From the IMG/VR virus record IMGVR_UViG_3300032236_002285, positions 124,001-188,000 of that record: a stretch of 64,000 nucleotides of DNA. The stretch is one strand, 5' to 3'. Both the position numbers and the translations under genes were made by a program. Below are positions 2,874-58,157 of the stretch, piece by piece; position 1 is the stretch's first letter, and the number at the start of each line of letters is the position of its first letter. The notes beneath the pieces are model-generated. The model did not search any database and had not been told where the DNA came from. It saw nothing but the letters and a program-made list of their open reading frames with translations.

Positions 2874-3473
2874 ATGAATATATGGTTTACATCTGATACA
2901 CACTTTGGTCATACAAATATTGCGGGTCCTAAAGTTTCTAACTGGAAATCTGGTTATAGAGATTTTAACTCTGTTCATGAAATGAATATGGCTTTGGTTG
3001 AAGGTATCAATAAATATGTTAAAGAAGATGATATTCTCTATCATCTTGGTGATTGGAGCTTTGGGGGAGTTCATAATATTTTACAATTTAGAAATTATAT
3101 TGTCTGTAAAAATATACACCTGATTTTAGGTAATCATGACCAGCATATAACTGACAAGGAAATAAAGTATCATGATACTTCATTTAATCCAATTCAGCTT
3201 TTTTCATCAGTCCAAGATGTTTTACACTTGAAGTTGGGTAAAACTGAGTTGTTTCTTTCTCACTATTCTCATCGTGTTTGGTTAGGTAGTCATAAAGGTG
3301 TTATACATCTTTATGGTCACTCACATGGTTCAATTCCTGACTATGGAAAATCAATGGATGTTGGAGTTGATGTTGCTTTTAAGAGATTTGGTGAGTATCG
3401 TCCATTTAATATTGGTGACATAACAAACATTATGTCTAAAAGAGAAGTAGAAAAAATAGACCACCATGGATAG
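2874..3473 (+). CDS. calcineurin-like metallophosphoesterase
   Basis: SDTHFGH, LGDWSFG, GNHD, HGHSH motifs; likely ATG at 2874. Confidence 0.9.
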   Translation: MNIWFTSDTHFGHTNIAGPKVSNWKSGYRDFNSVHEMNMALVEGINKYVKEDDILYHLGDWSFGGVHNILQFRNYIVCKNIHLILGNHDQHITDKEIKYHDTSFNPIQLFSSVQDVLHLKLGKTELFLSHYSHRVWLGSHKGVIHLYGHSHGSIPDYGKSMDVGVDVAFKRFGEYRPFNIGDITNIMSKREVEKIDHHG

Positions 3474-3636
3474 TTTATATAATAGATTATCTATTCTAAA
3501 GATGATTCTTAATTCGAGTTATGGTGAAGGTAAGACCGTAACTAATGTATATGAGGAATCTTATAAAATAAGAAAAAAGATACACTCAATAAAAACTAGA
3601 AAAGAAAAAATTAAACGAATATTCTATTTGAAATAG
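3466..3636 (+). CDS. 56-aa micro-protein: PolB motif-B-like segment plus RKEKIKRIF helix
   Basis: Not in ORF track; manual translation MDSLYNRLSILKMILNSSYGEGKT...KTRKEKIKRIFYLK*; start overlaps upstream stop (ATGGATAG). Confidence 0.7.
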   Translation: MDSLYNRLSILKMILNSSYGEGKTVTNVYEESYKIRKKIHSIKTRKEKIKRIFYLK

Positions 3637-3656
3637 AAAAATAAAACAAGACTATC

Positions 3657-4526
3657 ATGAACGATGTGAAAGGATTTTGTAAGTTAATGGATATCAGTGT
3701 TCCGGATTACGAACACTTTGATTATTATATCCATCAACTATCAAAAACAGAAAAGTGGAAAAATATTTACGACCTTATTAAACTATTTGAAGACGCTGAA
3801 AGTAAATACGGTGATCTTTACGAATATCGTTTTAAGAAGGCAAATGAAATTATTGAATTTTTAAAAACAACAAGAGCTTATAATGAGCTTCAAGATGATA
3901 ATTTATTACCTGACTATCCAACAACTAAAAACTTTGAGTATTCAGATGATAAAAAATACATTTCTATTGATATTAGAAAGGCAAACTGGGTGGTTCTTAA
4001 AAAATATGACCCAGAGTTTGCACCGGAATTAGGAAATTCATATGAAGACTTTATAGCTAAATTTGATGTACCTGAAATATTCAATCATTCAAAACAATTA
4101 AGGCAGTTTATCTTTGGTAATATCAATCCAAAAAGACAAGGTAAAGCACAAAGAGTTATTATTGAGAGTTTACTGAATAAATATAAACACCTCAATTTAG
4201 AAATTGCTTGTATAAAAAATGATGAGGTTATTTATTCTTTTGATAGCTTTGAAAAAATTGAAGAAATCTTAAATACAATTGATAAAGATTTATTTAAAAC
4301 TAAACTTTTTATCGTTGAAAGAATAAAAGATTTTCGAATCAATACATACTTATCTGAAAAAGGTGAGAAATTACATAGAGAAATGGTAGGATGTAATGGT
4401 AATTTATTTTTCTTATATTTAAAGAAGTATGTGTTGAATGAGCCGATTGATATAAGAGATTTATATTTTAAAATGGATGGTAACCTAGCTATCTGGAATG
4501 TTGAAGGTTTAAAAGTAAGTCTGTAA
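3657..4526 (+). CDS. hypothetical protein
   Basis: 289-aa ORF; ISIDIRKANW and IKNDEVIY segments, function not recognised. Confidence 0.75.
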   Translation: MNDVKGFCKLMDISVPDYEHFDYYIHQLSKTEKWKNIYDLIKLFEDAESKYGDLYEYRFKKANEIIEFLKTTRAYNELQDDNLLPDYPTTKNFEYSDDKKYISIDIRKANWVVLKKYDPEFAPELGNSYEDFIAKFDVPEIFNHSKQLRQFIFGNINPKRQGKAQRVIIESLLNKYKHLNLEIACIKNDEVIYSFDSFEKIEEILNTIDKDLFKTKLFIVERIKDFRINTYLSEKGEKLHREMVGCNGNLFFLYLKKYVLNEPIDIRDLYFKMDGNLAIWNVEGLKVSL

Positions 4527-4528
4527 TT

Positions 4529-4786
4529 ATGTCTTTGTTGGTCAATGTTTATTATGGTGAAGATAAAAATCTTGTAGAATCTTTCTCAATTGAAATAGGA
4601 AGAAAAGTAACATCAATAGATGATGCTAGATTGTTGATAATTGAACATTTAGATAGTTTTTATTTTGATGTTAAATATAAAATAAATGTATTTTCATCTT
4701 TTGATGGTGATACAAGTATTAACTTAAATTTTGAAAAAGATATTTGTTTAAATAGAGAACTCTTAATAAGAAAAATATTAGAATGA
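4529..4786 (+). CDS. hypothetical protein, C-terminal RELLIRKIL helix
   Basis: 85-aa ORF in tight operon. Confidence 0.7.
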   Translation: MSLLVNVYYGEDKNLVESFSIEIGRKVTSIDDARLLIIEHLDSFYFDVKYKINVFSSFDGDTSINLNFEKDICLNRELLIRKILE

Positions 4787-5412: not shown

Positions 5413-5414
5413 AA

Positions 5415-5882
5415 ATGAAAACAATCCTAACAAAAGAGGGTAAGGAAAAACTTCAAGAGGAATTAAACTTTTTAATGACTACTGAGAAAAGTCGTGTTAT
5501 AAATGACTTAGCTGAGGCTCGTGAAAGTGGAACTCTAGAAGAAAACACACAATATTTGATTGCTAAAGAAGAATATGAAAAGGTTCAAAAAAGAATTGAA
5601 AAAGTTCAATCTATCTTATCAAATGTTGTAGTAGTTGATGCTTCTAATATTAAAACTGACAAAGTTGCTATTTTAACAACGGTTAAAGTTTTGAATATGG
5701 GTAGTAACAAAGAAATGACATTTAAAATTGTGCCGGAAAATGAGATAGATGTTAAAACAAGTAAAATATCAACAAGTAGTCCAATAGGTGCGGGACTTTT
5801 TGGAAAAGTATTAGGTGATATTTGTGATATTAAAACACCGGCTGGTTTATTAAAATTTAAAATATTAGAAATAAGTATATGA
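5415..5882 (+). CDS. greA: transcription elongation factor GreA homologue
   Basis: LTKEGKEKLQEEL...AREsGTLEENTQY..AKEE coiled coil; C-term IVPENE...ISTSSPIGAGLFGK..GD...KTPAG. Confidence 0.92.
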   Translation: MKTILTKEGKEKLQEELNFLMTTEKSRVINDLAEARESGTLEENTQYLIAKEEYEKVQKRIEKVQSILSNVVVVDASNIKTDKVAILTTVKVLNMGSNKEMTFKIVPENEIDVKTSKISTSSPIGAGLFGKVLGDICDIKTPAGLLKFKILEISI

Positions 5883-6280: not shown

Positions 6281-6282
6281 AA

Positions 6283-6654
6283 ATGAATAAAACAAATTTT
6301 ATAGAGTTTATTAAAGAGTTAGGATTTGCGCAAGTTTGGCAGACAAATCCTAACTATTTTAGTTTAACAACTGACGTGATTGGTCTCGCTAATCAAAATT
6401 ATCAAGCTTTTTGTGACCAATTAAACGTTCATCTTGATGATGAAAATGAATTGGCACAATTATCACTCTCACAACTGAGTACTCATACGAGTGCTGGTAA
6501 AAGTTTTGGTAGATTTGACTTAAAAACATTTGGTGAACCAGGTGATTTTCAGATGCAGATCTTTATGAGTTTTGTGAAAGGTGCTTTTAAGAATCCACCA
6601 AATAATATAATTCAATATATGAGAGATAAAAAAATCAAAAGTATTCTAAAATAA
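6283..6654 (+). CDS. hypothetical protein, C-terminal RDKKIKSIL helix
   Basis: ORF track 6259..6654; likely ATG 6283. Confidence 0.7.
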   Translation: MNKTNFIEFIKELGFAQVWQTNPNYFSLTTDVIGLANQNYQAFCDQLNVHLDDENELAQLSLSQLSTHTSAGKSFGRFDLKTFGEPGDFQMQIFMSFVKGAFKNPPNNIIQYMRDKKIKSILK

Positions 6655-6667
6655 CTAATAAAATTTT

Positions 6668-6675
6668 TATATTTG
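6668..6675 (+). promoter_or_regulatory. Bacteroidota-type -7 element TATATTTG
   Basis: Exact TAnnTTTG, ATG 4 nt downstream; no clear -33 box seen. Confidence 0.5.
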
Positions 6676-6679
6676 TAAT

Positions 6680-7066
6680 ATGAATTATGATCAAGAAATA
6701 ATAATTATAGAAATGACACCTTTTATATTTGAAGATGGTAATACTTACTATTTTAAAATAGTTAAAAGAGGTTCTTCTAATGATTATCATGATCTTTTTG
6801 TTTATGAAAAAATCAAAACAGAAACCAAAAATATCTTTGGTAGAGTAAAAATTGATGAGTGTTTCAATAAGATAAACAAAAGTCCTGAGCTCGTATCTAC
6901 AAGTTTAGATACGAATGAAATTAAAAGAAATATTAAAAAAATATTGATTGCTACTAAAGCTAACCACCGATTAAAAAATTGGGATGGTTTTGTTGGTGAC
7001 ATACCTAATGATGTTAAAACGGCTCTTAAAAGAGAGAGTTCTTTGAAAAACATTTTAGGTGAATAA
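6680..7066 (+). CDS. hypothetical protein, C-terminal RESSLKNIL helix
   Basis: 128-aa ORF. Confidence 0.7.
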   Translation: MNYDQEIIIIEMTPFIFEDGNTYYFKIVKRGSSNDYHDLFVYEKIKTETKNIFGRVKIDECFNKINKSPELVSTSLDTNEIKRNIKKILIATKANHRLKNWDGFVGDIPNDVKTALKRESSLKNILGE

Positions 7067-7076: not shown

Positions 7077-7559
7077 ATGATTAAATTTAGTAAAATGGTA
7101 ACTGAAAATGCTAGTACATCTGGTTTTAAGTTAGGATTAGATGTTCATGGAGTTATAGATGCTATGCCTGAGTTCTTTGCTTTTCTAACTGATTCATTTG
7201 TTAAAAATGGTGGTGAAGTTCACCTAATAACTGGTGGTCATTGGAACGAAGGATTTGAAAAACAACTAACTGAATGGGGTATAAAATGGTCACATAAATT
7301 TTCAGTTTATGACCATCTAATTGAAACTGGTGCTAATATTGTTGGTGAAATTCAATTCCCAGATGGAACAATTCAAAAGAAATTTGAAGATGGTCTTTGG
7401 GACCATGTTAAGTCTGACTATTGTAAACAACATAATATATCATTACATATTGATGATACCTTGGTGTATAATGATTTTTTCCAAACACCATTTGCTAGAT
7501 TATGGTCACATAATCAAAAACCAAAAGCGTCTCATAAAGACCTAAGACACTTAAAATAA
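7077..7559 (+). CDS. HAD-like protein (degenerate motif I)
   Basis: GLDVHGVI, LITGG, LHIDD; preceded by AATATATA at 7065-7072. Confidence 0.55.
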   Translation: MIKFSKMVTENASTSGFKLGLDVHGVIDAMPEFFAFLTDSFVKNGGEVHLITGGHWNEGFEKQLTEWGIKWSHKFSVYDHLIETGANIVGEIQFPDGTIQKKFEDGLWDHVKSDYCKQHNISLHIDDTLVYNDFFQTPFARLWSHNQKPKASHKDLRHLK

Positions 7560-7987
7560 TGAAAAAATCCGCTGGTGTAGTTATTGTCTTGAGAAAAGAC
7601 AAGGTATTTCTTTGTCATCCAACCAACTCAAATTGGTATGGAACTTATTCTTTTCCAAAGGGTGGAGTTGATAAAGATGAAACCACATTAGATGCTGCTA
7701 TACGAGAACTAAAAGAAGAAACATCTATTGTAGTTAATACAAAACAAATATCAAATATTAAAGATCCTATTGTTGTTTATTACCAAAATAAAAAGGGTAT
7801 CTTATATAAGAGTATAGCTTTATATACGGTTTATATAAATAGTGTCTCTGAGATTGGTTTAGAGTCAGAAATTCTTCCAAAAGAAAGACTTCAATTAGAA
7901 GAAGTTGACTGGGCCGGTTTTCTTACAAAAGAAGAAGCTAAATTAAGAATTTTTCATAAGACCGCTTCTGTATTAGAAACAATTTAA
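7559..7987 (+). CDS. Nudix hydrolase
   Basis: FPKGGVDKDETTLDAAIRELKEETSI Nudix box. Confidence 0.9.
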   Translation: MKKSAGVVIVLRKDKVFLCHPTNSNWYGTYSFPKGGVDKDETTLDAAIRELKEETSIVVNTKQISNIKDPIVVYYQNKKGILYKSIALYTVYINSVSEIGLESEILPKERLQLEEVDWAGFLTKEEAKLRIFHKTASVLETI

Positions 7988-8023: not shown

Positions 8024-8440
8024 ATGCCTTTACCTTTTTCCAATAATTTAAATTCTGCTGTTAATACATCAATACCTATAGCAATGATGTATCAAGGAGA
8101 AGAAAAAATTGAAATAAATTTAGACCATCCTATTTTTGTAGTTTATGTTAATACTAAAAATGTAAGTCCTCAAGTAGCTGAGGAGCATTTATATAAAACA
8201 AAAAAGATGTTTGATATCTATAAAAACATTACCGTTTGGGTTTTATCTTCTGATGAAAACAAAGTTGAATGTGTTTATGATGGTCAGTGTAGACAAAGAG
8301 ATATGGAAATAAGTGACTTAATAAAAGAAATAAATACAAGAATTGACATTATGTCTAAATCAAACTCTTTTGAAGATTTCAAAATTAACATTAGGGATTG
8401 GCGAATAAATGAACTTGTAAATGGCTCTAAAGAAGAATAA
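8024..8440 (+). CDS. hypothetical protein, C-terminal RDWRINELV helix
   Basis: 138-aa ORF. Confidence 0.7.
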   Translation: MPLPFSNNLNSAVNTSIPIAMMYQGEEKIEINLDHPIFVVYVNTKNVSPQVAEEHLYKTKKMFDIYKNITVWVLSSDENKVECVYDGQCRQRDMEISDLIKEINTRIDIMSKSNSFEDFKINIRDWRINELVNGSKEE

Positions 8441-8792
8441 AACAGAAATACTTGATAAGATAATAACCAATGAAGAACTTGGTTATTATCATTGGAGTTG
8501 GTTGGATGATGATGATTGGGATTATCATGATGGTTATTGTGATTGCTATATGTGTATGCCTGTTGACTATGATTACTTACCAGATGAGTTTCAACCTAAA
8601 CCAATTGAGCATATTAGTAAGAGAGGTATTAGAGTAACCATAAGTTCATATCAAACAGGTAGATTAATAGATATGACTTCTATTTATTCTAAAGAAACTC
8701 TTAGGCAAAAAAGAATCAACCATATTTTAGGCATAGAATCAATGGAACATTCTCGTCCAACTTTTGCGGATATTTTGAATATTAAAAAATAA
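8421..8792 (+). CDS. hypothetical protein, acidic/Cys patch and RQKRINHIL helix
   Basis: 123-aa ORF with DDDDWDYHDGYCDCYMC. Confidence 0.7.
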   Translation: MALKKNKTEILDKIITNEELGYYHWSWLDDDDWDYHDGYCDCYMCMPVDYDYLPDEFQPKPIEHISKRGIRVTISSYQTGRLIDMTSIYSKETLRQKRINHILGIESMEHSRPTFADILNIKK

Positions 8793-8970: not shown

Positions 8971-9042
8971 GGTCGGGTGACCGAGTGTTTTAGGTGGAGG
9001 CCTGCAAAGCCTTTAACGGTGGTTAGAATCCATCCCCGACCT
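8971..9042 (+). tRNA. tRNA-Cys (GCA), CCA not encoded
   Basis: Acceptor GGTCGGG/CCCGACC, D stem ACC/GGT, anticodon stem GAGGC/GCCTT with loop CTGCAAA (GCA at 9004-9006), T stem GGTGG/CCATC, discriminator U73 as expected for Cys. Confidence 0.92.
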
Positions 9043-9056
9043 CTAATTTTATATTA

Positions 9057-9650
9057 ATGGCAAATTCATATCGTTTAGGTACGGTTCATACCAACTATTT
9101 ATCAAATGATGAACTAAAAACTGAGTTCAGAGATTACAAGTTAAAAGTTATTAATGGTGACGTAAAGTTTACACCATCTGAAAGGTTCATAGAGAAATAT
9201 AAAGAAACTTTGTATTTCATTTCAGATAAATTTCCTAATGATATTATCAGTGGCTCACTAGCATTGAATTTATTTGGTCTTATTAATCGAGACACAAATG
9301 ATATTGATATCATAATTGATGATAAAGATAGATATCCTAAATATCATAAAGACCATTATGATGATGAATTCTCTTCAGTAAACAGATTGGGTTTTATTGC
9401 GTTCAAATATAAAAGAGGTATTTTTACTTCTGAGAAAAAATATAATGTGGATTTCTTCCATAATACTTATGGTGCTTCTTTTATTACATTTAATTTCAAT
9501 GGTAAGGAACTTAAACTTCACAATCCTTTAGAGGTTATGGATTATAAGTTAAATATGGCTATTGATCCAAAAATTAGTAGAACTACTTCTTTTAAACACA
9601 ATGAAGATTTGACAAGAATTTTTGGTCAAATGTCTTGGCAATTAATGTAA
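9057..9650 (+). CDS. Pol-beta-superfamily nucleotidyltransferase
   Basis: IISGSLAL...RDTNDIDIII (hG[GS]...DxD) and later VDFF; N-terminal RDYKLKVI helix. Confidence 0.7.
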   Translation: MANSYRLGTVHTNYLSNDELKTEFRDYKLKVINGDVKFTPSERFIEKYKETLYFISDKFPNDIISGSLALNLFGLINRDTNDIDIIIDDKDRYPKYHKDHYDDEFSSVNRLGFIAFKYKRGIFTSEKKYNVDFFHNTYGASFITFNFNGKELKLHNPLEVMDYKLNMAIDPKISRTTSFKHNEDLTRIFGQMSWQLM

Positions 9651-9669: not shown

Positions 9670-10305
9670 ATGGCAAAGTACCTCAGTTATCGTTATATTT
9701 TTCCTCCACGTCCAAAAAACGCAATTCCAGACTCTGAATTATCTTTCTGGGATAATGGATCTTTGATTGCTCAACCAAAATTAAATGGTTCAAATTGTGT
9801 TATCTTTACAAATGGCGAAAAAACTATTGTAATGAACCGTCATAATCAAAGACTTACTAACTTTAATCTATCTGATAATGAAATCAAAGATATTTATCAT
9901 GGTGAAGGCTGGATGATTTTGAACGGAGAGTATATGAATAAGTCTAAGTCTGATGAAAATAGCCAAGTATTCAATCACAAGTTTGTTATTTTTGACATTC
10001 TTAGTTATAACGGTGAATATCTTGTAGGTAAAACATTTGAAGAAAGAATTAAATTACTTGATAGTCTTTATGGTCAAGTAGATTCTGAAAAAGAATATCT
10101 ATTCAAAGTAACAGAAAATGTTTATCGTGTTAAATCTTATGAAGTTGATTTCAAAAATATTTTTGATAAATTAACTCCGATTGATATGATTGAAGGCTTG
10201 GTGATGAAGCGTAAGAATGCTCGTCTTGAATTAGGTACTTCTGAAAATAATAATACTAAAAGTCAGTTGAAATGCCGCAAAGCAACCAAAAACTATAAAT
10301 ATTAA
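9670..10305 (+). CDS. ATP-dependent ligase adenylation domain, probably RNA ligase
   Basis: Motif I QPKLNGSN, III ILNGEY, IIIa FVIFDIL, IV EGLVMK, V LKCRK; ends without an OB domain. Confidence 0.8.
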   Translation: MAKYLSYRYIFPPRPKNAIPDSELSFWDNGSLIAQPKLNGSNCVIFTNGEKTIVMNRHNQRLTNFNLSDNEIKDIYHGEGWMILNGEYMNKSKSDENSQVFNHKFVIFDILSYNGEYLVGKTFEERIKLLDSLYGQVDSEKEYLFKVTENVYRVKSYEVDFKNIFDKLTPIDMIEGLVMKRKNARLELGTSENNNTKSQLKCRKATKNYKY

Positions 10306-10308: not shown

Positions 10309-10536
10309 ATGCCAAGTAACTGGAATCATTTTTGTCCTTATTGTTTAACAACGACAAAACAAAATATTAAATGTGGTACTTGTGGTCAAGAGACTATGAC
10401 TATATCAAAACAAGCCAGAGTTCCTAAAAAAGGAGCTAGTAAAAAAGAGTGGAAATTACTTTTTGATACATTTCCCTATATTTTGGCTAATGCTCCTAGA
10501 ACAAAATCTTTAGTTGATTTGGGGTTTCAAAAGTAA
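10309..10536 (+). CDS. small zinc-finger protein
   Basis: CPYC...CGTC. Confidence 0.65.
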   Translation: MPSNWNHFCPYCLTTTKQNIKCGTCGQETMTISKQARVPKKGASKKEWKLLFDTFPYILANAPRTKSLVDLGFQK

Positions 10537-10576
10537 TTCTATTAATTTAATATATAAGAAAAACAATCAAGATAAC

Positions 10577-11146
10577 GTGGATAAATTCTCAAAATTAAAG
10601 CCAAAAGACGAATTTGCAGAAGGTAAAGAAAAAGTTCTTTACAAAGATAATCACTTTCAAATTGTTAAATTTGAAGATTGGTCAATCTTAAAAGAAAGAG
10701 ATGCGGTTTGTTGCATTCCTTATTTGATTGAAACAAATCAAATAGTTTTGAGATATGAATATGTTCCTACTTTCAAATATGCTGATGGTCAAGAATATCA
10801 TGTTACTTTAGTATGTGGTGGTATAGAACAAGGTGAGTCTGTTGAGAAAGCCTTGAGAAGAGAACTTGAAGAAGAAGCTGGTATTGTTATAAGAGACGAT
10901 TTTCAATTTGAAGAAGAAATGAAGCCACTTTTTATCAATAAGGCTACTGCTAATAAATATTATCCATTCCTTATTCCCTTGAATGAAAGAGATTATCACG
11001 AGGTAGTTGCTAAAGGTGATGGATCTAAAGAAGAAGAACTAAGTAAGTCTGTAAAAGTTGATGTTAAATATATCAACTCACTTAATCCATCTGATTTAAT
11101 AACAGATTATATGCTAATGAAACTTAAAGAATATCTTAAACCATAA
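10577..11146 (+). CDS. Nudix hydrolase (ADP-ribose pyrophosphatase-like)
   Basis: GGIEQGESVEKALRRELEEEAGI; likely GTG start 10577, downstream of AATATATA 10549-10556. Confidence 0.88.
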   Translation: MDKFSKLKPKDEFAEGKEKVLYKDNHFQIVKFEDWSILKERDAVCCIPYLIETNQIVLRYEYVPTFKYADGQEYHVTLVCGGIEQGESVEKALRRELEEEAGIVIRDDFQFEEEMKPLFINKATANKYYPFLIPLNERDYHEVVAKGDGSKEEELSKSVKVDVKYINSLNPSDLITDYMLMKLKEYLKP

Positions 11147-12576: not shown

Positions 12577-13524
12577 TTAGATTTTACTTAGTAATTCTGC
12601 TTTCTTTTCAGAAAACTCTTCATCTGTTAAGATACCTGCTGAATGTAAATCGCCTAATTTTTTGATTAGTTCAATTACTTCATCAGATTCTTGTTTAAGT
12701 ATGTCTTTAAGACCTATTTTTTTCACATCTTTAACTTCTGCTGGCTTTCTACTTTCAGGTAAAATTTGGATAATAGTAGAAGCAATATAATGCTTTTCAA
12801 AGTCTATATCAACTTCAGTGAATTTTTGATTAGAAGCTTCACCTTTTTCTACTCTACCTGTTTCAACGGAATTGATAGGGGTCATATTACTTGATAGAGA
12901 ACCATATGTTTTTGATAAATCAACATCAGAAGTGTAACTACAATTTACAGCATTGTTACTTGAGTAATAAGCATTTGTTGTAGTTGTAGAGCCTATAATA
13001 CCTGATCCGTTTGTTGTTAAGCAACCACTATAAGTTGGAGTTGTTGTTCCAAACCAAACACTAGGTCTGTAGTAAGGATAAGACGGATAGGTTGGGTAAT
13101 AAACCGGGTACCACTTTTCAACAATGATTTTATCAAATTTTGACTTCCAGTTATCTAAAGTAATAACATCTTCTTTATAGAAGAAAACTTCTAAAAGACC
13201 ATTGTTCTGAGTAGCATCTAATGCTTCTCCAGAGTTTTCAATTTCGTAAGTTGAAAATTTGAATTTTTTTCTATCGTCAATAAAGCAGTCAAGATAAACC
13301 CTTTGTCCTGGTTTTACTACTAATCCTGTTTTTGAGATTGATTGACCGTTTAATTTAATATCAGCGAGTACTGAAACGGTTAGTGGGTTAAATAATTCGA
13401 TTTCGAATTCGTCTCCATCAGTTAAGAAGACTTTCCCATTTTTAATTGATTTTCTCCCTCTGTCGTTAGGAGATACAATCCAAGCATTTGGCTTGGAATT
13501 GCTACTTGCAATTGTTTTTGCCAT
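12577..13524 (-). CDS. hypothetical protein with C-terminal SHOCT domain
   Basis: C-term LIKKLGDLHSAGILTDEEFSEKKAELLSKI is a SHOCT pattern. Confidence 0.75.
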   Translation of the reverse strand: MAKTIASSNSKPNAWIVSPNDRGRKSIKNGKVFLTDGDEFEIELFNPLTVSVLADIKLNGQSISKTGLVVKPGQRVYLDCFIDDRKKFKFSTYEIENSGEALDATQNNGLLEVFFYKEDVITLDNWKSKFDKIIVEKWYPVYYPTYPSYPYYRPSVWFGTTTPTYSGCLTTNGSGIIGSTTTTNAYYSSNNAVNCSYTSDVDLSKTYGSLSSNMTPINSVETGRVEKGEASNQKFTEVDIDFEKHYIASTIIQILPESRKPAEVKDVKKIGLKDILKQESDEVIELIKKLGDLHSAGILTDEEFSEKKAELLSKI

Positions 13525-41734: not shown

Positions 41735-41779
41735 ACTAATAAAAAAAAATTTTCTATAACAAGAAAAGTTTTTTTGTTT

Positions 41780-43061: not shown

Positions 43062-43284
43062 TATGAATTTTGAAAATTACTACTTAGATATACAAAAAAT
43101 ATCTCAAATACCTTCACTTGAAGATAGGGACCAAATACATAGATACTATATGGATATGCTTATTTTTTTTACTGATGGTTCTGGTAGAGAAAAAGTATCA
43201 CAATCAATTATGAAAACACTTATCAAATCTGGGTATTTAATTGATTCTCGTGATGAAAAATTAGGTGAATTGTTAAATGGATAA
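43054..43284 (+). CDS. hypothetical protein, C-terminal RDEKLGELL helix
   Basis: 76-aa ORF containing IFFTDGS. Confidence 0.65.
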   Translation: MFNMNFENYYLDIQKISQIPSLEDRDQIHRYYMDMLIFFTDGSGREKVSQSIMKTLIKSGYLIDSRDEKLGELLNG

Positions 43285-43675: not shown

Positions 43676-45424
43676 ATGTTAATTAGTGAATTAGGAATTA
43701 GAGGATTCAAGTCTTATGGCAATAACGAACAAGTATTAAAATTAAACACAGAAAAAGGAGAATTAATTCTCCTTGTTGGAAATAATGGAGCTGGTAAATC
43801 ATCTCTTTTAGATTCCTTCGATTACACACTTTATGGTAAAGTTAGAGGTCGTAAAAAGAAATGGGCCACTTTATCAACACTTCCAAACAGAATTAACGGT
43901 GAATTACTTAATAGAATTAAATTTAATTCTTTAGGTACCGACGTTGAAATCAAACGTGGTATTTCACCAAGCGTATTAGAACTCATTGAAAATGGAGTAA
44001 CCAATGAAAGAGCTGGTAAAGGAAACATTGATGAAAAGATTGAAAAGTATATCGGTATGGATATTGAAACTTTCAAATCATTTATCTCAATGTCTATCAA
44101 TGACTTCAAAAACTTTATCTCTTTATCAAATGAAGAAAAACAACTTCTTTTAGACAAGTTATTTAACTTAGAAGTTATCAATATATTAAATGGTATCTTA
44201 AAAGATATTGCTAAGAGTAATAAAACCAAAGCCGCTTCTTTTGATGCTGAAATTAGAACTTTAGATGACTCTATAGCTTCTATTCAAAGGTCTATTGATA
44301 AAGCCATTGAAAGACAAAAAGAAGAAGCCAGACTAGCCTTAGAACGTGAAAAAGAAGATATTCAATCAGAGATTGATAGAATCACAAATGAGATGAATTC
44401 CAGAAAAGATGATTATAAGTCTTTGAAAGAAAAGATGGATAAAATCAAAGAAAAAGATTCTGAACTTTCTGATGAGATGGATAAAGAAAAAAGACAACTT
44501 ATCAACTGTCAGAATGATATTAAGAATGTTCAAAAAGAATTAGATTTGTATGATTCTGGTAAATGTCCAACTTGTAAAACAGATTTTGATTCAGTTCACT
44601 TTGCTAATTTAAGAACGGCTTTAGAAGAAAAGAAATTAGGCTTTGAAAATATCAAAGCTGAAATTGAAGCCAATGTTACTAAAGTAAGAGAAAGGCAAGC
44701 TAAGTTAAAATCTTTATCAGAAACTACAACAACTACTTTTAATGATTTAAGTTATTTATTGAAGAATTATAAATCAGAGATTGATAAATTAACTCAAAAG
44801 AAAGCTAGTCAAACTGCACCGGTTAATACTACACCTTCTGTCGATATTCAAGAGTTTAAAAATACAATTGATGAACTTGAAGAAAAGAAAGTCATCAGTA
44901 CTGATAAAATTACTGAGTGTAAAGAAAAAGATCTTTACTACAAAGAGTTAAATAGAATTTTTGGTGAAGATGGTGTTAAGAAATCTATCATTTCTGGTAT
45001 TATCAAACCAATCAATCACTTTATTGCTGAGAATATCAAAAAGATGGGTTTACCATTTGAAGTTAAGTTAGATGAGACTTTTACAGCTGAGATTAAACAA
45101 TTAGGTTCTCAAATTGAACACGATTCTTTATCAACTGGTGAAACTAAAAAAGTAAATATTAGTATCTTAATTGCTTACTTGAAATTGATTAGAACTAAAC
45201 GTCATATCAATATTCTCTTCTTAGACGAGGTTTTCTCATCTATTGATATAGAAGGTATAGATTCTATTTTAGCACTCTTAAAATCGTTTGCAAACGATTA
45301 TAACATCAATATCTTTGTTGTTCACCATGCTATTTTGAATCAAGAGATGTTTGATAGAATATTGAAGATTAACAAAGAAGTCTTTTCTTCAATAGAAGAA
45401 GTAAATCTTAACTATGGAAATTAA
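43676..45424 (+). CDS. SbcC/Rad50/gp46-like SMC ATPase
   Basis: GNNGAGKS Walker A, long coiled coil, CPTC zinc hook, LSTGE signature, LFLDE Walker B, VVHH. Confidence 0.92.
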   Translation: MLISELGIRGFKSYGNNEQVLKLNTEKGELILLVGNNGAGKSSLLDSFDYTLYGKVRGRKKKWATLSTLPNRINGELLNRIKFNSLGTDVEIKRGISPSVLELIENGVTNERAGKGNIDEKIEKYIGMDIETFKSFISMSINDFKNFISLSNEEKQLLLDKLFNLEVINILNGILKDIAKSNKTKAASFDAEIRTLDDSIASIQRSIDKAIERQKEEARLALEREKEDIQSEIDRITNEMNSRKDDYKSLKEKMDKIKEKDSELSDEMDKEKRQLINCQNDIKNVQKELDLYDSGKCPTCKTDFDSVHFANLRTALEEKKLGFENIKAEIEANVTKVRERQAKLKSLSETTTTTFNDLSYLLKNYKSEIDKLTQKKASQTAPVNTTPSVDIQEFKNTIDELEEKKVISTDKITECKEKDLYYKELNRIFGEDGVKKSIISGIIKPINHFIAENIKKMGLPFEVKLDETFTAEIKQLGSQIEHDSLSTGETKKVNISILIAYLKLIRTKRHINILFLDEVFSSIDIEGIDSILALLKSFANDYNINIFVVHHAILNQEMFDRILKINKEVFSSIEEVNLNYGN

Positions 45425-45701
45425 TAATCTAATAATTGAATATTTAGAAACAAGATATAATAAAGTTATTAATATCAAGCGTCAAAATTATGATATGGCG
45501 GCTAATTTTAGAGATCTAGAAAGAGAGTTGTCTATTAAGATATTTAGAATTATTAAAGGTGATTATAATGATTTGAATTATAAACAATCAGAAGATGAAA
45601 TTGGTAATTATTGCTTAAAAGAATTTAATTGTAGTATTTATGATTATAATTGTATAAAAGCGATTAAGCGACATATAAAATTAAAGGATTTAGGAATATA
45701 A
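45414..45701 (+). CDS. small protein with UVR (ClpC/UvrB-type) coiled-coil motif and RHIKLKDL helix
   Basis: KRQNYDMAANFRDLEREL. Confidence 0.6.
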   Translation: MEINNLIIEYLETRYNKVINIKRQNYDMAANFRDLERELSIKIFRIIKGDYNDLNYKQSEDEIGNYCLKEFNCSIYDYNCIKAIKRHIKLKDLGI

Positions 45702-45729
45702 AAAAGCCTCTGATTTCTCAGAGGCTTTT
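45702..45729. terminator. bidirectional intrinsic terminator
   Basis: AAAAGCCTCTGA-TTTC-TCAGAGGCTTTT. Confidence 0.88.
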
Positions 45730-45744
45730 CTTTTAATATATTTT

Positions 45745-47154
45745 TTAGCAGTCGTAACAATCTACTGTTCCTCTACCACTACAATTATCACATTCTACTG
45801 TACCATCTCCGTTACATTCTGGACAATCTGTTTCATTTCCCTCTTCATCTTCAATGTGACCTAATCCTTCACAATTTGAACAATCAACACTTCCATCTCC
45901 ACCACAATCGTCACATTCCATTCTACCCGTTCCGCCGCAAGTATCACAAGGTCTAACATAGTCACCACCTGTATCTTCTAAGAAATAACAACCACCAGTA
46001 TCTTCACTTGAAATAGTTTTTTTACGAGGATTGAAATATTTAAGTGTATCTAAGTAAGGGAAATTATCCATACTAGCATCAGTTAAATTAACCGTTAAAT
46101 CTAAATTAACTCTACTTCCATCCGGTGCTACAGCTTGATTACTATCTGAACTATTATTATATTCTTTATAATACCAACCATTTTCTTTAGCATAATCTCT
46201 GAATAATTGAACATCTGAATCATTTACCGTATAAACTCTGTCTAAGAATTCTTTACCATCTCTTAACTTCCAAAGTAAAGCTCTACCAACAATTTTTTCA
46301 GTATCATCCATTGATTTGTAAATAACTAAACCAACTTCTGGATTAGCAGTGTAAACTTCTAACCAACTATCTGGAGCACCAGCCATACAAGACGAACCTA
46401 AAGTCCCACTTCTTTGATAATAATTTGAGTTATGATACCAGTGAGCAATATCAGAACCCCTAACAACTTCAAAGTAAGAGAATTTATCATTCATCTTATC
46501 AATAGTAGCTTTATATAAATTTACAAATTGTTCAAAATCTCTATCAGCAAATGTAGTAATACCAGCAGCTCTTAAAAGTGCTCTCATAGCTCTACCTACT
46601 TTTACTTCTTGTCTGTTTGTTGACCAAACTTTTTTAATTCTCTCATCAACAGCTCTTATCTTTTCAACATTATAAACACCTTGACCAACATCATTACCTG
46701 ATTGGTCTTTGAATTTAACCCAAGCATAAGTTTTACCTGATTGTTCAGATGTTACTCTAGCAATAACCTCACCTAAATCTGTAGATTGTGGTTTATAAGG
46801 CTCAGAGCCTTCTTCAAATGTATAACCTAGTTGAGTAAATAATTTTGCATTTGAATCTTTGTGTTTTAACCAACCACCACCAGAACCGATAAATCTAACT
46901 ACTTCTTTAGTATCACCTAAAATCTCTTGAGCTTTTCTATCAGGAGTAAAAGTAATTGTATCGTTTTTTGTGAACTCAATATCAAGGTAATTAGCTTGAA
47001 CATTGTAGTCATTATTTTCAGCATCTAAAATAGCTTTCGCTACAGGGCTGTCAATCTTAGTCATTGCTTTTCTGAAGTTATCGGAATAAACAACATTAGA
47101 TTCTAGAATAAATTCTAGGTTTTCGTTTATAAAATCTGAATATTTTTTAATCAT
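45745..47154 (-). CDS. SCM/RALLW/PYLDT family protein with capsid-targeting-like N-terminus and C-terminal CxxCxGxG zinc finger
   Basis: MIKKYSDFINE; LGSSCM, GRALLW, FLDRVY, FPYLDT; six CxxC units at C-terminus. Confidence 0.8.
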   Translation of the reverse strand: MIKKYSDFINENLEFILESNVVYSDNFRKAMTKIDSPVAKAILDAENNDYNVQANYLDIEFTKNDTITFTPDRKAQEILGDTKEVVRFIGSGGGWLKHKDSNAKLFTQLGYTFEEGSEPYKPQSTDLGEVIARVTSEQSGKTYAWVKFKDQSGNDVGQGVYNVEKIRAVDERIKKVWSTNRQEVKVGRAMRALLRAAGITTFADRDFEQFVNLYKATIDKMNDKFSYFEVVRGSDIAHWYHNSNYYQRSGTLGSSCMAGAPDSWLEVYTANPEVGLVIYKSMDDTEKIVGRALLWKLRDGKEFLDRVYTVNDSDVQLFRDYAKENGWYYKEYNNSSDSNQAVAPDGSRVNLDLTVNLTDASMDNFPYLDTLKYFNPRKKTISSEDTGGCYFLEDTGGDYVRPCDTCGGTGRMECDDCGGDGSVDCSNCEGLGHIEDEEGNETDCPECNGDGTVECDNCSGRGTVDCYDC

Positions 47155-47184
47155 TTTCAACTATGTTATATTTTAAGATATAAG

Positions 47185-47224: not shown

Positions 47225-47413
47225 ATGCTAGAAATTAAAGTAGAAGGTGTTGGTATTGAAAAAGCCTTAAAAACACTTAAAAGAAAATTTGACAAAACTA
47301 AAACTCTTAGACAATTAAGAGATAGAAAAGAATTTGTTAAAAAATCAGTTAAAAGAAGAGCTGAAATAAACAAAGCTAAATATGTTCAAGAAAAGTTTGG
47401 TAACAACGATTAA
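47225..47413 (+). CDS. rpsU: 30S ribosomal protein bS21
   Basis: IEKALKTLKRKFDKTKTLRQLRDRKEFVKKSVKRR...KAKY resembles Bacteroidota bS21. Confidence 0.92.
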   Translation: MLEIKVEGVGIEKALKTLKRKFDKTKTLRQLRDRKEFVKKSVKRRAEINKAKYVQEKFGNND

Positions 47414-47693
47414 GAATTTATTCAGTGATAATCAAAGAACATTTGATTTAGGTAAACTACAAAAGGTTGGTTTTATAAAACCTTTAGAAGATCTATCTGG
47501 TTGTCCTAATTGTAAAAGTAAAAACATATCTTGGAAGTTCTTTATACCAGTAGATGGCTCAAAACCTACACAACCATCTTTATCTATCTGTAAAGATTGT
47601 GGATATCAAGATATAAGAGGTGAATTTGAAAAAACAAACAAATCATTACTTAGAGAAAAGAAAATTAATAAGATATTAGATGGGATTCAATAA
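47382..47693 (+). CDS. zinc-ribbon protein with REKKINKIL helix
   Basis: CPNC...CKDC. Confidence 0.7.
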   Translation: MFKKSLVTTIKNLFSDNQRTFDLGKLQKVGFIKPLEDLSGCPNCKSKNISWKFFIPVDGSKPTQPSLSICKDCGYQDIRGEFEKTNKSLLREKKINKILDGIQ

Positions 47694-56150: not shown

Positions 56151-56197
56151 CTATTTAACAAAAGAATTTTATGTATATATTATTTATTAAGACTTTC

Positions 56198-56228
56198 TTT
56201 GGTATTAAACTTTATTTGATTATATTTG
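56198..56228 (+). promoter_or_regulatory. Bacteroidota-type sigma70 promoter
   Basis: TTTG 56198-56201, 19-nt spacer, TATATTTG 56221-56228. Confidence 0.75.
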
Positions 56229-56237
56229 TAAAATAAT

Positions 56238-56972
56238 ATGCAAAAGAAAAAGATATTGATTTTTACCGGAGCTGGAGTTTCTGCTGAAAGTGGCGTTGCT
56301 ACTTTTAGAACAGGAGATGATGGGCTTTGGTATAATCACAAAGTAGAAGATGTTGCCACACCTGGTGGATGGCGTAGAGATAGAGAAAAAGTTCTTAATT
56401 TCTACAATATGAGACGTGCTCAACTTAAAGATGTTGAGCCAAACATAGCGCATAAAATAATTACCGATTTAGAAAAAGATTATGATGTTACTGTTGTAAC
56501 TCAGAATGTTGATGATTTACATGAAAGAGCTGGTTCAACAAATATAATTCATCTACACGGTGAATTAACAAAAGCAAGAGGTTGTATGTATGAACATAAA
56601 TCATCTGCTTTAGATAGTATTATTGATATAGGTTACGAACCGATTAAAATTGGTGATAAGTGTCCAACAACTGGTTCACAATTAAGACCTCATATTGTTT
56701 GGTTTGGAGAAGGATTAGATCAATCTGATATAGACAGAGCATCAGCAGCTGCTAATGATTGTAATATTTGTATTATTGTTGGTACTTCAATGCAAGTAGC
56801 ACCGGCTAATACTATTCCATTTTTAACAAAAGAATCAACTAACATTTACTATGTAGATCCATCTGATGCTGATTTTTATGTAGCAGAATATAGAAAAGAA
56901 CTCTTCCACCACTATCAAGAACTAGCATCAACTGGAATGGTAAAAGTTATAGAAGATATAAAAAAATTATAA
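56238..56972 (+). CDS. cobB: Sir2 family NAD-dependent deacylase
   Basis: GAGVSAESG, TFR, QNVDDLHERAG, HLHG, LRPHIVWFGE, VGTSMQV. Confidence 0.93.
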   Translation: MQKKKILIFTGAGVSAESGVATFRTGDDGLWYNHKVEDVATPGGWRRDREKVLNFYNMRRAQLKDVEPNIAHKIITDLEKDYDVTVVTQNVDDLHERAGSTNIIHLHGELTKARGCMYEHKSSALDSIIDIGYEPIKIGDKCPTTGSQLRPHIVWFGEGLDQSDIDRASAAANDCNICIIVGTSMQVAPANTIPFLTKESTNIYYVDPSDADFYVAEYRKELFHHYQELASTGMVKVIEDIKKL

Positions 56973-56974
56973 TT

Positions 56975-57247
56975 ATGAAAAAGGAATATTACAGTTACGA
57001 TTGTTACAAGTCCGCTTCATCATATGGTGATTTTATTAAGTCATTAGGCACATATACCTATGATGATGAAACTGACTCTATCGAATATAATGGTTATATT
57101 GATAGTTCTAGTGTTTATTCAGATTTAACAAGTCAAATAATGAAGTACTATAAAGATAGAGAAACACCTGAACAAAAAGCTATCCGTGAAGCTAAAGAAA
57201 AAGCTGAAAAAAGAAATAATACTATTAATCAAATTTTAGGTGAATAA
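56975..57247 (+). CDS. hypothetical protein, C-terminal RNNTINQIL helix
   Basis: 90-aa ORF. Confidence 0.7.
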   Translation: MKKEYYSYDCYKSASSYGDFIKSLGTYTYDDETDSIEYNGYIDSSSVYSDLTSQIMKYYKDRETPEQKAIREAKEKAEKRNNTINQILGE

Positions 57248-57810
57248 TGTCACATATATCAATTATTGATTGGATTACGGCTTTACTAATAGCATTGCCT
57301 TTATTTACTTTGTTTATTTCAATTCCAAGTTTTGTTGCTATGTATAAACTTGGTTTCAAAGCTTATCGTCAACAACTTCGTGTTTTGAAAATTATGAATC
57401 GTAAGATATCAAGTGGTTATAAAGTCATACATAATCAAGTTTATACATATGCTGGAACGGGTTATAATGTGCCAAATACAGTAACTAGAGTTGAAACTAA
57501 TCATTTTTTCCCAATTGTTATTGATAAAGACCATTTAATAATCTTAACAAAGAAGGAAGGACCTTTCAATACACTTTATATGCAATATTGTGAATTTAAA
57601 AATAAAGAATGGTCAAATGACAATATTGAAATAAAAACTTCAACTTGTTTATTTACTCAACTTCTTAATGATAGATTTCAAAAAAAAGTTGATAATCTTA
57701 TGAAAGAATCTGTTCAAATTGAAGGTGTTGAAAATCTAAACGAGTTATTAAATAGCCAAATAACTTCTATCAAAAGAGAAGAAGTATTAAATTCTATATT
57801 AAATGGATAA
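57247..57810 (+). CDS. membrane-anchored hypothetical protein, C-terminal REEVLNSIL helix
   Basis: N-terminal TM segment. Confidence 0.7.
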   Translation: MSHISIIDWITALLIALPLFTLFISIPSFVAMYKLGFKAYRQQLRVLKIMNRKISSGYKVIHNQVYTYAGTGYNVPNTVTRVETNHFFPIVIDKDHLIILTKKEGPFNTLYMQYCEFKNKEWSNDNIEIKTSTCLFTQLLNDRFQKKVDNLMKESVQIEGVENLNELLNSQITSIKREEVLNSILNG

Positions 57811-57976
57811 GAAAGATATTGTTATAGTAGATTATTTTACTAAACTAACAACTACTGAGCTTTCTGATGATGGTATTGAGGCATTTCGGAAATTAAACTT
57901 TCGTGTTTTAAATATTCGCAAGTGGAGAGGAAAAATAGAAAGACGAAAAGAAAAAATTAAAAGAATCTATGGATAA
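57803..57976 (+). CDS. 57-aa micro-protein: SF4 helicase Walker-B-like segment plus RKEKIKRIY helix
   Basis: Not in ORF track; manual translation MDKKDIVIVDYFTKL...IERRKEKIKRIYG*; ATGGATAA overlaps at both ends. Confidence 0.7.
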   Translation: MDKKDIVIVDYFTKLTTTELSDDGIEAFRKLNFRVLNIRKWRGKIERRKEKIKRIYG

Positions 57977-58157
57977 CAGAGACGTTATTGAAATCTTTGG
58001 TCAATTACTTAATAGTAATAAAGAAATTATGATGTTGAATTCTAGACAAACTGGTAAATCATCATCAGCGGCTCTTGTTAACTGGAGAAAAACATTTGAT
58101 AAGTATAATCGTGCTCAAGATAGAAAAGAAACCATAAAACGACTTTTTAATATATAA
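57969..58157 (+). CDS. 62-aa micro-protein: terminase Walker-A-like segment plus RKETIKRLF helix
   Basis: IMMLNSRQTGKS...DRKETIKRLFNI. Confidence 0.7.
   Translation: MDNRDVIEIFGQLLNSNKEIMMLNSRQTGKSSSAALVNWRKTFDKYNRAQDRKETIKRLFNI

Follow-up and report, generated by a model that had tools for sequence, protein, structure and literature searches.

Within a 64,000-nucleotide stretch of a huge bacteriophage genome (positions 124,001 to 188,000 of IMG/VR record IMGVR_UViG_3300032236_002285; hereafter, the window), sixteen plus-strand ORFs encode variants of a nine-residue peptide anchored by an arginine, most of them at the very end of the protein. All sixteen peptides listed in the preliminary description exist, although the positions given there are the starts of the ORFs, whereas the motif itself usually lies at their 3' ends. 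Twelve of them lie 1–6 residues from the stop codon, two are sub-terminal but conserved in orthologues, and two are doubtful. Coordinates below run from the Arg codon to the +8 codon.

The tail RKEKIKRIF (3598–3624) lies 3 aa before the stop of ORF 3466–3636, a tiny basic protein of 56 aa, and exemplifies a flavour ending in F or Y. RELLIRKIL (4754–4780), 1 aa before the stop of ORF 4529–4786 (85 aa), is a weaker example, with L instead of K at +3. RDKKIKSIL (6622–6648) lies 1 aa before the stop of ORF 6283–6654 (123 aa from the ATG, although the ORF finder starts at TTG 6259); its R, D, I, I, and L are invariant in 120 homologues, and the tail is kept in all full-length distant representatives. 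RESSLKNIL (7031–7057) lies 2 aa before the stop of ORF 6680–7066 (128 aa), and RDWRINELV (8393–8419) lies 6 aa before that of ORF 8024–8440 (138 aa), whose orthologue in the related phage LR745206 ends RNWRLGELLKNGDN. In ORF 8421–8792, RQKRINHIL (8703–8729) is followed by a 20-aa extension; the orthologue holds RERKIDQILG at the same place, but the extensions differ.

Further downstream, a second sub-terminal motif, RKNKIAKIF (42291–42317) in ORF 42192–42392, is followed by a non-conserved 24-aa extension, its orthologue holding RKRSIAKIF and an unrelated extension of 53 aa. RDEKLGELL (43249–43275) lies 2 aa before the stop of ORF 43054–43284 (76 aa; the orthologue ends RDEKIDQILS). RHIKLKDLG (45669–45695) is followed by a single I and the stop of ORF 45414–45701 (95 aa), the last gene before a hairpin and a convergent gene, and represents an LGI-stop flavour; its orthologue ends REIKLKQLGIK. 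REKKINKIL (47652–47678) lies 4 aa before the stop of ORF 47382–47693 (103 aa), which has a zinc-ribbon-like body, and is kept in 66 of 69 homologues.

RNNTINQIL (57212–57238) lies 2 aa before the stop of ORF 56975–57247 (90 aa), with orthologues ending RNSVIDKILG, RNEKIDKILGE, and RNNKIDQILG. REEVLNSIL (57775–57801) lies 2 aa before the stop of ORF 57247–57810 (187 aa, with an N-terminal TM-like helix), and both its R and its final L are present in 97 of 97 homologues. The F/Y flavour recurs in RKEKIKRIY (57944–57970), 1 aa before the stop of ORF 57803–57976 (57 aa), and in RKETIKRLF (58122–58148), 2 aa before the stop of ORF 57969–58157 (62 aa), whose orthologue ends RIQSVKKIFNI. On the other hand, RDYKLKVIN (9129–9155) lies near the N-terminus of the nucleotidyltransferase-like ORF 9057–9650 (with a faint Pfam hit to DUF6036), in a conserved N-terminal block (orthologue RDLKLSVIG), and fails the core pattern, with N at +8; RDGKIEAII (42044–42070; orthologue RDRKIDSIT) lies 47 aa from the end of ORF 41774–42214, and internal core matches occur genome-wide at the chance rate. 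Neither is counted as a tail.

The observation in the preliminary description therefore holds, and proves larger than was proposed. The regular expression used there fits only seven sites in the window, four of them in tails, although this is still far above expectation (0.14 overall, about 0 in tails). The absence of enrichment over a composition-matched background had been named as grounds for rejection; however, the simpler core R-x3-[IL]-x2-[IL]-[LFIYV] gives 11 hits in the last 20 aa of 73 window genes, against 0.28 from both whole-protein and tail-only shuffles (maxima 2 and 3). In the complete 634-kb genome of LR745206, 117 of 916 genes carry the core within 10 aa of the stop (4.7 ± 1.9 expected), 92 of them 0–4 aa from it, while internal matches are at chance. 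The gene calls throughout are a simple longest-ORF set. The LGI-stop flavour contributes about 30 more (30 against 1.4 expected), so that 16–18% of the genes carry a tail, and a profile scan recovered 140 tails at 8 bits or more, against five reversed decoys. In LR756502, 19 of 111 genes are carriers. A pattern-free analysis agrees, since over all genes of LR745206 Arg is 3.1-fold enriched exactly 10 residues before the stop, but not in pooled tail-negative phages.

Conservation is at the protein level, as had been proposed from the differing codons. DNA information is confined to codon positions 1 and 2, and the Arg codons of the motif in LR745206 (AGA 85, AGG 19, CGN 13) follow genome usage (88.7, 13.9, and 14.3 expected). 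The Arg is obligatory (117 against 7.5 expected) and Lys at its place is at chance (15 against 12.8), while +4 accepts only I or L, not V, M, or F. Positions outside the search pattern are also conserved, with D/E/N at +1 in 93 of 117, K at +3 in 78 of 117, N/D/K at +5, and K at -4 in 40 of 117. Three deep families keep the tail (97 of 97, 120 of 120, and 66 of 69), and tail status is identical in 45 of 46 orthologue pairs, although the carrier bodies are only 27–50% identical.

The statement that the carriers are otherwise unrelated is likewise confirmed. BLAST resolved 128 bodies into 123 components, profile–profile comparison with hhalign gave a probability of 0.3%, and a tail-trimmed deep profile found no relationship. 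No Pfam domain was found in the 20 largest carriers, and two AF2 models exhibit different topologies, one a TM helix plus beta sheet and the other alpha-beta4-alpha-alpha, with no fold matches. The tail is confined to this clade (the window phage, LR745206, LR756502, and IMG/VR relatives) and, in samples of 50–150 kb per phage rather than whole genomes, is found in 0 of 186 genes in LR756501, 0 of 70 in LR756500, 0 of 132 in Tenacibaculum phage PTm1, 0 of 86 in T4, and 1 of 73 in phage G. Carriers cluster in runs (54 adjacent pairs against 29.7 ± 4.5 expected) and make up 29% of the genes behind the host-type promoter TAnnTTTG, against 6.6% behind the ATATATA box that precedes the giant structural genes (odds ratio 5.9, p = 4e-8). 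These promoter classes are, however, inferred from sequence motifs only, no RNA run being listed for this phage.

The interpretation of the motif as a genome-wide targeting tag (a scaffold-docking site, localisation signal, or degron) is only partly supported. Its protein-level, terminal, and tag-like nature on unrelated proteins is borne out, but not which kind of tag it is. Scaffold or capsid docking is made less likely by the promoter association, and a classical C-terminal degron reading the free carboxylate is unlikely, because 0–10 residues, and 20–53 in conserved cases, can follow the motif. Localisation or docking to a shared partner remains the best reading, although we regard it as no better than evenly supported. 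In this view, the motif is a short C-terminal docking tail, probably a helix, with the consensus K-x-x-hydrophobic-R-[D/E/N]-x-K-[I/L]-[N/D/K]-x-[I/L]-L followed by 0–5 residues and the stop, and with two minor flavours, one ending in [I/L]-G-I-stop and one, R-K-x-K-I-x-x-I-[F/Y], on very small proteins. AF2 places the motif of the 187-aa carrier in a separate terminal helix (175–186) after a low-confidence linker. However, the second model (pLDDT 83.6) puts only its first part in a helix (107–115) and leaves the last 8 residues as coil, so that the helical picture rests on one moderate-confidence model plus helical-wheel reasoning. If the tail is drawn as an alpha-helix, the conserved residues fall on one face, with the Arg between the I/L residues at +4 and +7 and the L at +8, and Lys at -4 and +3 on the rim. 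This face is inferred to plug into a hydrophobic groove with an acidic pocket on one shared partner. As the tail is confined to this clade and missing from another jumbo phage of a Bacteroidetes host, such a partner is more likely encoded by the phage than by the host. The sequence data establish the protein-level selection, terminal position, Arg specificity, unrelated bodies, conservation in orthologues, clade restriction, and association with promoter class, whereas the helical state, the binding of a partner, its being single and phage-encoded, and the purpose of the tethering are inferences, with no partner identified and no binding shown.

The alternative that best survives, although it is unlikely, is a timed-destruction tag or protease tether, in which the tail delivers to a protease either the carrier itself or a host protein bound by it, as the SspB C-terminal peptide tethers cargo to ClpX. 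Carriers look like early, fast-evolving proteins, the tail is terminal after a flexible linker, and LR745206 encodes a ClpP (E = 8e-68), with the gene just downstream of it ending in a near-variant of the tail, RDYKIQKIME. However, no ClpX-type unfoldase sits next to this ClpP, and phage ClpP-family proteases are often head-maturation proteases. In addition, the variable distance to the C-terminus and the tolerated extensions are unlike ssrA-type tags, and recognisable early enzymes in the same operons (GreA/GreB, NUDIX, ligase) lack the tail.

A capsid-loading signal, docking proteins to the scaffold or inner capsid surface for ejection into the next host, is less likely still. The T4 internal proteins, on which a literature search returned reviews, offer a precedent for a short terminal peptide shared by unrelated, hypervariable phage proteins; carriers are small and fast-evolving, and some clusters in the window lie beside giant structural genes. 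Nevertheless, carriers are depleted about 4.5-fold behind the box preceding those genes compared with units behind host-type promoters, about 150 cargo species would be unprecedented, at least six carriers have an N-terminal TM-like segment, and the tail is C-terminal, with no evident protease-site pattern next to it.

Common descent, in which the tail would be the last conserved helix of one enormously diverged paralogue family and part of its fold, is similarly improbable. The fairly narrow size range (interquartile range 83–138 aa), the tandem runs, and the ancient co-inheritance of the tail within a family are consistent with it, but lengths run from 46 to 731 aa, the three sequence comparisons found no relationship, the two AF2 topologies differ, and in one of them the tail is detached from the body by the linker. 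A generic membrane-binding amphipathic helix, as in MinD or FtsA, appears slightly less probable. Its C-terminal position, its basic and hydrophobic residues on one face, and tails such as RKETIKRLF, which superficially resemble that of MinD, would fit, but Lys cannot replace the Arg, +4 accepts only I or L, the conserved acidic or amide residue at +1 and N/D at +5 are not expected for lipid binding, only three or four residues are hydrophobic, and the motif is absent from other phages of similar composition.

A signal acting in the ribosome at termination, for example to promote re-initiation on the overlapping downstream gene in a host lacking Shine–Dalgarno pairing, is very unlikely. Carriers do overlap the downstream gene more often than other small genes (59% against 38%), the motif lies close to the stop, and the residues after it (N/D followed by G/D/E) often encode the ATG of the next gene. 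However, the distance to the stop varies as described above, 23% of carriers have no same-strand downstream gene, ORF 45414–45701 keeps its tail in the orthologue despite the hairpin and convergent gene that follow it, and stop-codon usage differs little (TAA 63% in carriers against 73% in the rest; chi-square about 4.6 with 2 df, p about 0.1). Finally, a nucleotide-level element (promoter, ribosome-binding region, or recombination site) or a by-product of AT-rich composition is refuted, despite the 29% G+C, the common K, I, L, N, and AGA-Arg codons, and some over-use of ATA at +7 and TTA at +8, by the codon-position information, the genome-like synonymous codon usage, the shuffled controls, and the absence of the motif from equally AT-rich phages.

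The tail does not seem to have been described before, although several systems resemble it in part. The capsid targeting sequence of the T4 internal proteins is also a short terminal address on unrelated, rapidly diversifying small phage proteins, but it is N-terminal, about 10 residues long, different in sequence, removed by the prohead protease, and carried by a handful of proteins made for the head, whereas the tail is on about 150 genes depleted from the presumed late or structural units. Encapsulin cargo-loading peptides and bacterial microcompartment encapsulation peptides are also short peptides or amphipathic helices at a terminus, joined by a flexible linker to unrelated cargo and binding one receptor surface; these systems, however, have different consensus sequences and a recognisable shell gene next to a few cargo genes, whereas here the carriers are scattered over more than 600 kb and no shell was identified. 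PIP-box and sliding-clamp-binding tails, including the T4/RB69 polymerase C-terminus, share the C-terminal position, the hydrophobic-x-x-hydrophobic-hydrophobic spacing, the flanking basic residues, and the convergence of many proteins on one hub. However, the polymerase piece of this clade ends in RRLSVVMDIFGGFK, a different tail of the T4 type, carriers show no replication domains, and the obligatory Arg has no counterpart in the PIP consensus.

The SspB peptide and the poxvirus ankyrin proteins with a C-terminal PRANC/F-box-like module, the latter a large, fast-evolving viral gene set, also combine a variable target-binding body with a constant C-terminal element tethering it to one degradation machine. 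This comparison is conceptual, as there is no sequence similarity, no unfoldase or ligase partner has been identified, and PRANC is a folded domain of about 40–50 aa rather than a peptide of about 14 aa. The MinD/FtsA membrane-targeting helices are likewise C-terminal, short, and basic plus hydrophobic, but the strict Arg and I/L requirements and the conserved polar positions of the tail indicate specific protein recognition rather than lipid binding. The SHOCT domain is another small C-terminal element of diverse proteins, and one window gene (12577–13524, minus strand) appears by eye to end in a SHOCT-like sequence; however, no carrier scores against any Pfam model over its tail and, by eye, the spacing of conserved residues differs by one position.

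About one in six genes of this huge phage and its close relatives encode proteins, mostly small, fast-evolving, and of unknown function, that end in the same short arginine-anchored motif, which looks like a helix and behaves like a protein address or docking tag. Under the inferred model, roughly 150 different and mostly early-expressed proteins would be tethered to the same place or machine, the variable body doing the specific job and the constant tail providing the common connection.

The window is AT-rich (29% G+C) and densely coding, with giant genes (1715, 1679, 1430, and 1074 aa) interspersed with clusters of small genes. Over 56200-58800, it is 72-74% identical at the DNA level to the metagenomic huge phages LR745206 (634,780 bp) and LR756502 (642,428 bp), and it is also represented as a 476 kb IMG/VR contig. 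The 634 and 642 kb genomes are among the largest described by Al-Shayeb et al. (PMC7162821), who place their largest genomes in the 'Mahaphage' clade and predict that the genomes of more than 634 kb replicate in Bacteroidetes. A tRNA-Cys (GCA) gene, found by both ARAGORN and Rfam, lies inside the small-gene cluster at 8971-9043 (+).

The preliminary description reported a shared arginine-anchored peptide in about 16 otherwise unrelated ORFs, and this observation holds. All 16 peptides exist on the + strand, although the coordinates assigned to them were the starts of the ORFs that carry them, whereas the motifs lie at the 3' ends. Twelve are 1–6 residues from the stop, two (in ORFs 8421-8792 and 42192-42392) are 20–24 residues from it, one is N-terminal (ORF 9057-9650), and one is internal (ORF 41774-42214). 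The pattern originally proposed fits only seven sites, so the simpler core R-x3-[IL]-x2-[IL]-[LFIYV] was used, which gives 11 hits in the last 20 residues of 73 genes, against 0.28 expected, whether whole proteins or only the tails are shuffled.

The suggestion that conservation acts at the protein level was also confirmed. When the instances are aligned as DNA, the information sits at codon positions 1 and 2, and third positions are at background. In the larger set from LR745206, synonymous codons at the conserved residues follow genome-wide usage (Arg is AGA 85, AGG 19, and CGN 13, against 88.7, 13.9, and 14.3 expected), and only ATA at +7 and TTA at +8, counted from the Arg at position 0, are somewhat over-used. 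Selection is therefore on the peptide. Only the one or two residues after the motif (often N or D followed by G, D, or E) are visibly shaped by the start of the next gene, since at junctions such as 43270-43284 and 57796-57810 these residues (for example N-G-stop, read from AAT GGA TAA) contain the ATG of the next gene in an 8-nt overlap.

The tail is far more widespread than the window alone suggests. Among 916 genes called in 623 kb of LR745206, which leaves out its last 12 kb, 117 carry the core within 10 residues of the stop, against 4.7 +/- 1.9 expected, and 92 of them lie 0–4 residues from the end, while matches elsewhere in proteins occur at the chance rate. These gene sets are simple longest-ORF calls, although C-termini do not depend on the choice of start. 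Positions that were not part of the search pattern are conserved too, as +1 is D/E/N in 93 of 117, +3 is K in 78 of 117, +5 is N/D/K, and -4 is K in 40 of 117. A substitution scan shows that Arg is obligatory (117 against 7.5 expected), while Lys is at chance (15 against 12.8), and that +4 accepts only I or L (I 68, L 49, V 4, M 1, F 0). Gly at +8 is unexpectedly enriched (30 against 1.4), which revealed a second flavour, R-[DEN]-x-K-L-x-x-[IL]-G-I-stop, to which the RHIKLKDLGI tail of the window belongs. A third flavour, R-K-x-K-I-x-x-I-[F/Y], sits on very small proteins of 46–83 aa. Counting all flavours, 147–164 of the 916 genes (16–18%) carry the tail. A profile built from the tails scores 140 real tails at 8 bits or more, against 5 reversed decoys, and, with no pattern at all, Arg is 3.1-fold enriched exactly 10 residues before the stop over all genes, a signal that does not appear in tail-negative phages.

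Carriers are small (median 117 aa, range 46–731), lie on both strands, are scattered over the genome, and tend to occur in runs, with 54 adjacent pairs against 29.7 +/- 4.5 expected. None of the 20 largest carriers has a Pfam domain, and the ten window carriers tested match nothing meaningful in Pfam or PHROGs. Only 6 of 117 carriers have a TM-like segment. By contrast, recognisable enzymes in the same window operons (5415-5882, 7559-7987, 10514-11146, 9670-10305, and 2829-3473, all +) do not carry the tail, these being a GreA/GreB transcript-cleavage factor homologue (E = 1e-20), two NUDIX hydrolases, an ATP-dependent DNA/RNA ligase-like protein, and a metallophosphoesterase. Directly after the carrier 45414-45701, at 45702-45735, there is a G+C-rich inverted repeat followed by Ts (AAAAAGCCTCTGA...TCAGAGGCTTTTCT) and then a convergent gene (45745-47160, minus strand), an arrangement that looks like an intrinsic terminator at an operon end.

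Several tiny tail-bearing ORFs, at 3466-3636 (+) in the window and at 255010-255237 (-), 265897-266055 (+), 440158-440361 (+), 83154-83393 (+), and 597241-597891 (+) in LR745206, contain segments that look like family-B DNA polymerase motifs, namely K-x3-[NS]-S-x-Y-G (motif B; 3 in LR745206 against 0.37 expected, plus 1 in the window) or D-F-A-S-L-Y-P-S-T-Q-R (motif A; nearly identical to the real polymerase piece). They may be partial copies of polB left by mobile-element activity, or mimics. The window copy is followed by a gene (3657-4526) with a faint LAGLIDADG-like hit (E = 0.06).

The tail is strongly conserved within carrier families. The 187-aa carrier (57247-57810) has about 100 homologues, with R and the final L invariant in 97 of 97, and the 123-aa carrier (6283-6654) has 120 homologues, with R, D, I, I, and L invariant. 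An exhaustive profile search found 33 cluster representatives, of which every full-length one keeps the tail, and the zinc-ribbon carrier (47382-47693) keeps it in 66 of 69. Among 46 reciprocal-best pairs between the window and LR745206, tail status is the same in 45, the exception having V at +4, while carrier bodies are only 27–50% identical, against mostly 55–80% for other genes. Bodies lacking the tail were sought outside the clade as evidence of modular gain, but three word-index searches and the exhaustive profile search returned only tail-bearing full-length relatives plus fragments, so that neither gain nor loss was observed.

With regard to structure, the AF2 model of the 187-aa family (pLDDT 68.5) predicts a TM-like helix, a beta-sheet body, a linker (171–175) with pLDDT below 50, and then a separate helix at 175–186, which is the motif. 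The arrangement of a terminal helix after a flexible linker on unrelated cargo, as in encapsulin and microcompartment targeting peptides, is predicted in this model, but only in part in that of the 123-aa family (pLDDT 83.6), which has a different alpha/beta topology and where only the first part of the motif is helical. Fold searches of both bodies against PDB, BFVD, and AFDB clusters gave nothing below E = 0.01, with every TM-score under 0.6 and only one row reaching 0.5. If the tail is placed on a helical wheel, the conserved residues (-4, -1, 0, +3, +4, +7, +8) fall on one face, with Arg in the middle of the hydrophobic patch, and the residue after the motif (N, D, G, or K), or the G-I ending of the second flavour, would fit ordinary helix C-capping, although these last points are inferred from the sequence profile alone.

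The tail is abundant in the window (11 of 73), LR745206, LR756502 (19 of 111), and IMG/VR relatives down to 38% protein identity. In the regions sampled, which did not cover whole genomes, it is absent from 186 genes of the 735 kb LR756501, from LR756500, from T4, and from Tenacibaculum phage PTm1, which has a Bacteroidetes host, whereas phage G has one chance-level hit. All of these are AT-rich. This distribution favours a receptor encoded by the clade itself.

Two motifs are enriched upstream of genes in the intergenic regions of LR745206. The first is the Bacteroidetes-type -7 box TAnnTTTG (often TATATTTG), and the second is a strongly enriched AATATATA box (up to 14-fold), about 30 nt before starts, which precedes the giant structural genes and is probably a phage late promoter, by analogy with the TATAAATA of T4. 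Carriers make up 29% of genes in units behind the first and 6.6% behind the second (odds ratio 5.9, p = 4e-8), and among genes of 200 aa or less the figures are 36% and 10.6%. Carriers thus look like early genes, although these promoter classes are inferred from sequence motifs alone. The phage was found in freshwater samples, in DNA runs only and in no RNA run.

The simplest account of these results is a short linear docking tail, probably helical, that connects a large and rapidly diversifying set of early proteins to one shared, probably phage-encoded partner. The earlier proposal of a genome-wide targeting tag, such as a scaffold-docking site, localisation signal, or degron, is therefore partly supported, in that the motif behaves as a terminal tag, but the kind of tag is not settled by sequence. 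Selection on the peptide, its enrichment near the stop, the Arg and I/L specificity, the unrelated bodies, the conservation in orthologues, and the restriction to this clade rest directly on the analyses described, whereas the helical conformation, the early expression, the binding to a partner, and the nature of that partner are inferred, as would be any tail-dependent proteolysis, clamp binding, or packaging. The connection could serve for co-localisation, for the hand-over of bound targets to a machine, or for timed removal.

Among the alternatives, a protease-tether role remains possible but unsupported. LR745206 encodes a ClpP (Pfam E = 8e-68), followed in the same direction by a 210-aa ORFan ending RDYKIQKIME, a near-variant of the tail with Met at +8 (122918-123550 (-) and 123556-124221 (-)), but no unfoldase sits beside the ClpP. 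A degron of the ssrA/ClpX type, where recognition includes the free terminal residues or the carboxylate at a fixed distance, is unlikely, since 0–10 residues follow the motif, and in the two sub-terminal window cases the motif is conserved while the unconserved extensions of 20–53 aa that follow it differ in sequence and length. The free C-terminus is therefore not part of what is recognised.

A capsid targeting sequence of the T4 type is located at the N-terminus of the precursor, whereas this motif is C-terminal, and N-terminal positions 2–12 of all genes show no shared motif (information content at most 0.24 bits). No conserved [LIV]-x-E pattern, as would be expected of an adjacent prohead-protease cleavage site, is evident at -16 to -5, and carriers are depleted behind the box that precedes the structural genes, as far as the inferred promoter classes can show.

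Hidden paralogy was rejected, as BLAST gives 123 components from 128 bodies, profile-profile comparison with hhalign gives a probability of 0.3% between two deep families, and a tail-trimmed profile of one family finds exactly one orthologue per genome, with no enrichment of carriers among its weak hits. A generic membrane-targeting helix of the MinD/FtsA type is unlikely, because its function depends on amphipathicity and net charge, so that Lys and Arg, and the large hydrophobic residues, would be interchangeable, contrary to the specificity observed at positions 0 and +4.

The motif is not a clamp-binding tail in any simple sense. The family-B DNA polymerase of LR745206 appears to be split into two genes about 100 kb apart on opposite strands (232803-234344 (+) and 130568-131992 (-)), with motif A in a 513-aa piece and motifs B and C in a 474-aa piece, which ends ...VVMDIFGGFK, a different tail resembling the clamp-binding tails of T4/RB69. 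The PIP-box consensus Q-x-x-[ILM]-x-x-[FY]-[FY], or the phage equivalent, does not correspond to this tail either, where position 0 is an obligatory Arg and +8 is L far more often than F or Y. No SHOCT or other Pfam hit was found over the tails of 30 carriers, at E up to 1 for the 10 window carriers and up to 0.01 for the 20 largest LR745206 carriers, although a different 315-aa window protein (12577-13524 (-)) ends ...GILTDEEFSEKKAELLSKI, which by eye looks like a SHOCT-type short C-terminal domain and represents a different shared C-terminal element. A DNA- or RNA-level signal, or a shadow of the initiation region of the downstream gene, is rejected by the period-3 information and genome-like codon usage, and a composition artefact by the shuffles, the reversed-tail decoys, and the equally AT-rich phages that lack the tail.

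Terminal address peptides are represented by the T4 capsid targeting sequence, the cargo signals of encapsulins and microcompartments, and clamp-binding tails, none of which is known to operate at this scale in a phage. No description of this motif was found in the literature searched, in Pfam or PHROGs, or in the language-model atlas, where a query with the tail alone returned only unnamed viral clusters below the meaningful score. A more far-reaching and tentative possibility is a proteome-scale sorting or tethering system, where roughly one gene in six carries a linear C-terminal address read by a dedicated phage-encoded receptor. Such a system may concentrate early effector proteins in a phage-built compartment or platform, or use them as interchangeable adaptors that bring different host targets to one machine, analogous to SspB-ClpX tethering or to poxvirus ankyrin/PRANC proteins. 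It would be the first linear-motif-based sorting code described for a phage, and would give a handle on about 150 'dark matter' genes at once.

Huge phages consist mostly of genes of unknown function, and here one simple sequence feature groups about 16–18% of a genome of more than 600 kb into a single functional class and predicts a single receptor that can be fished out with a peptide. The receptor, if found, would reveal how a giant phage organises its early proteins, and could also provide a portable tag for engineering.
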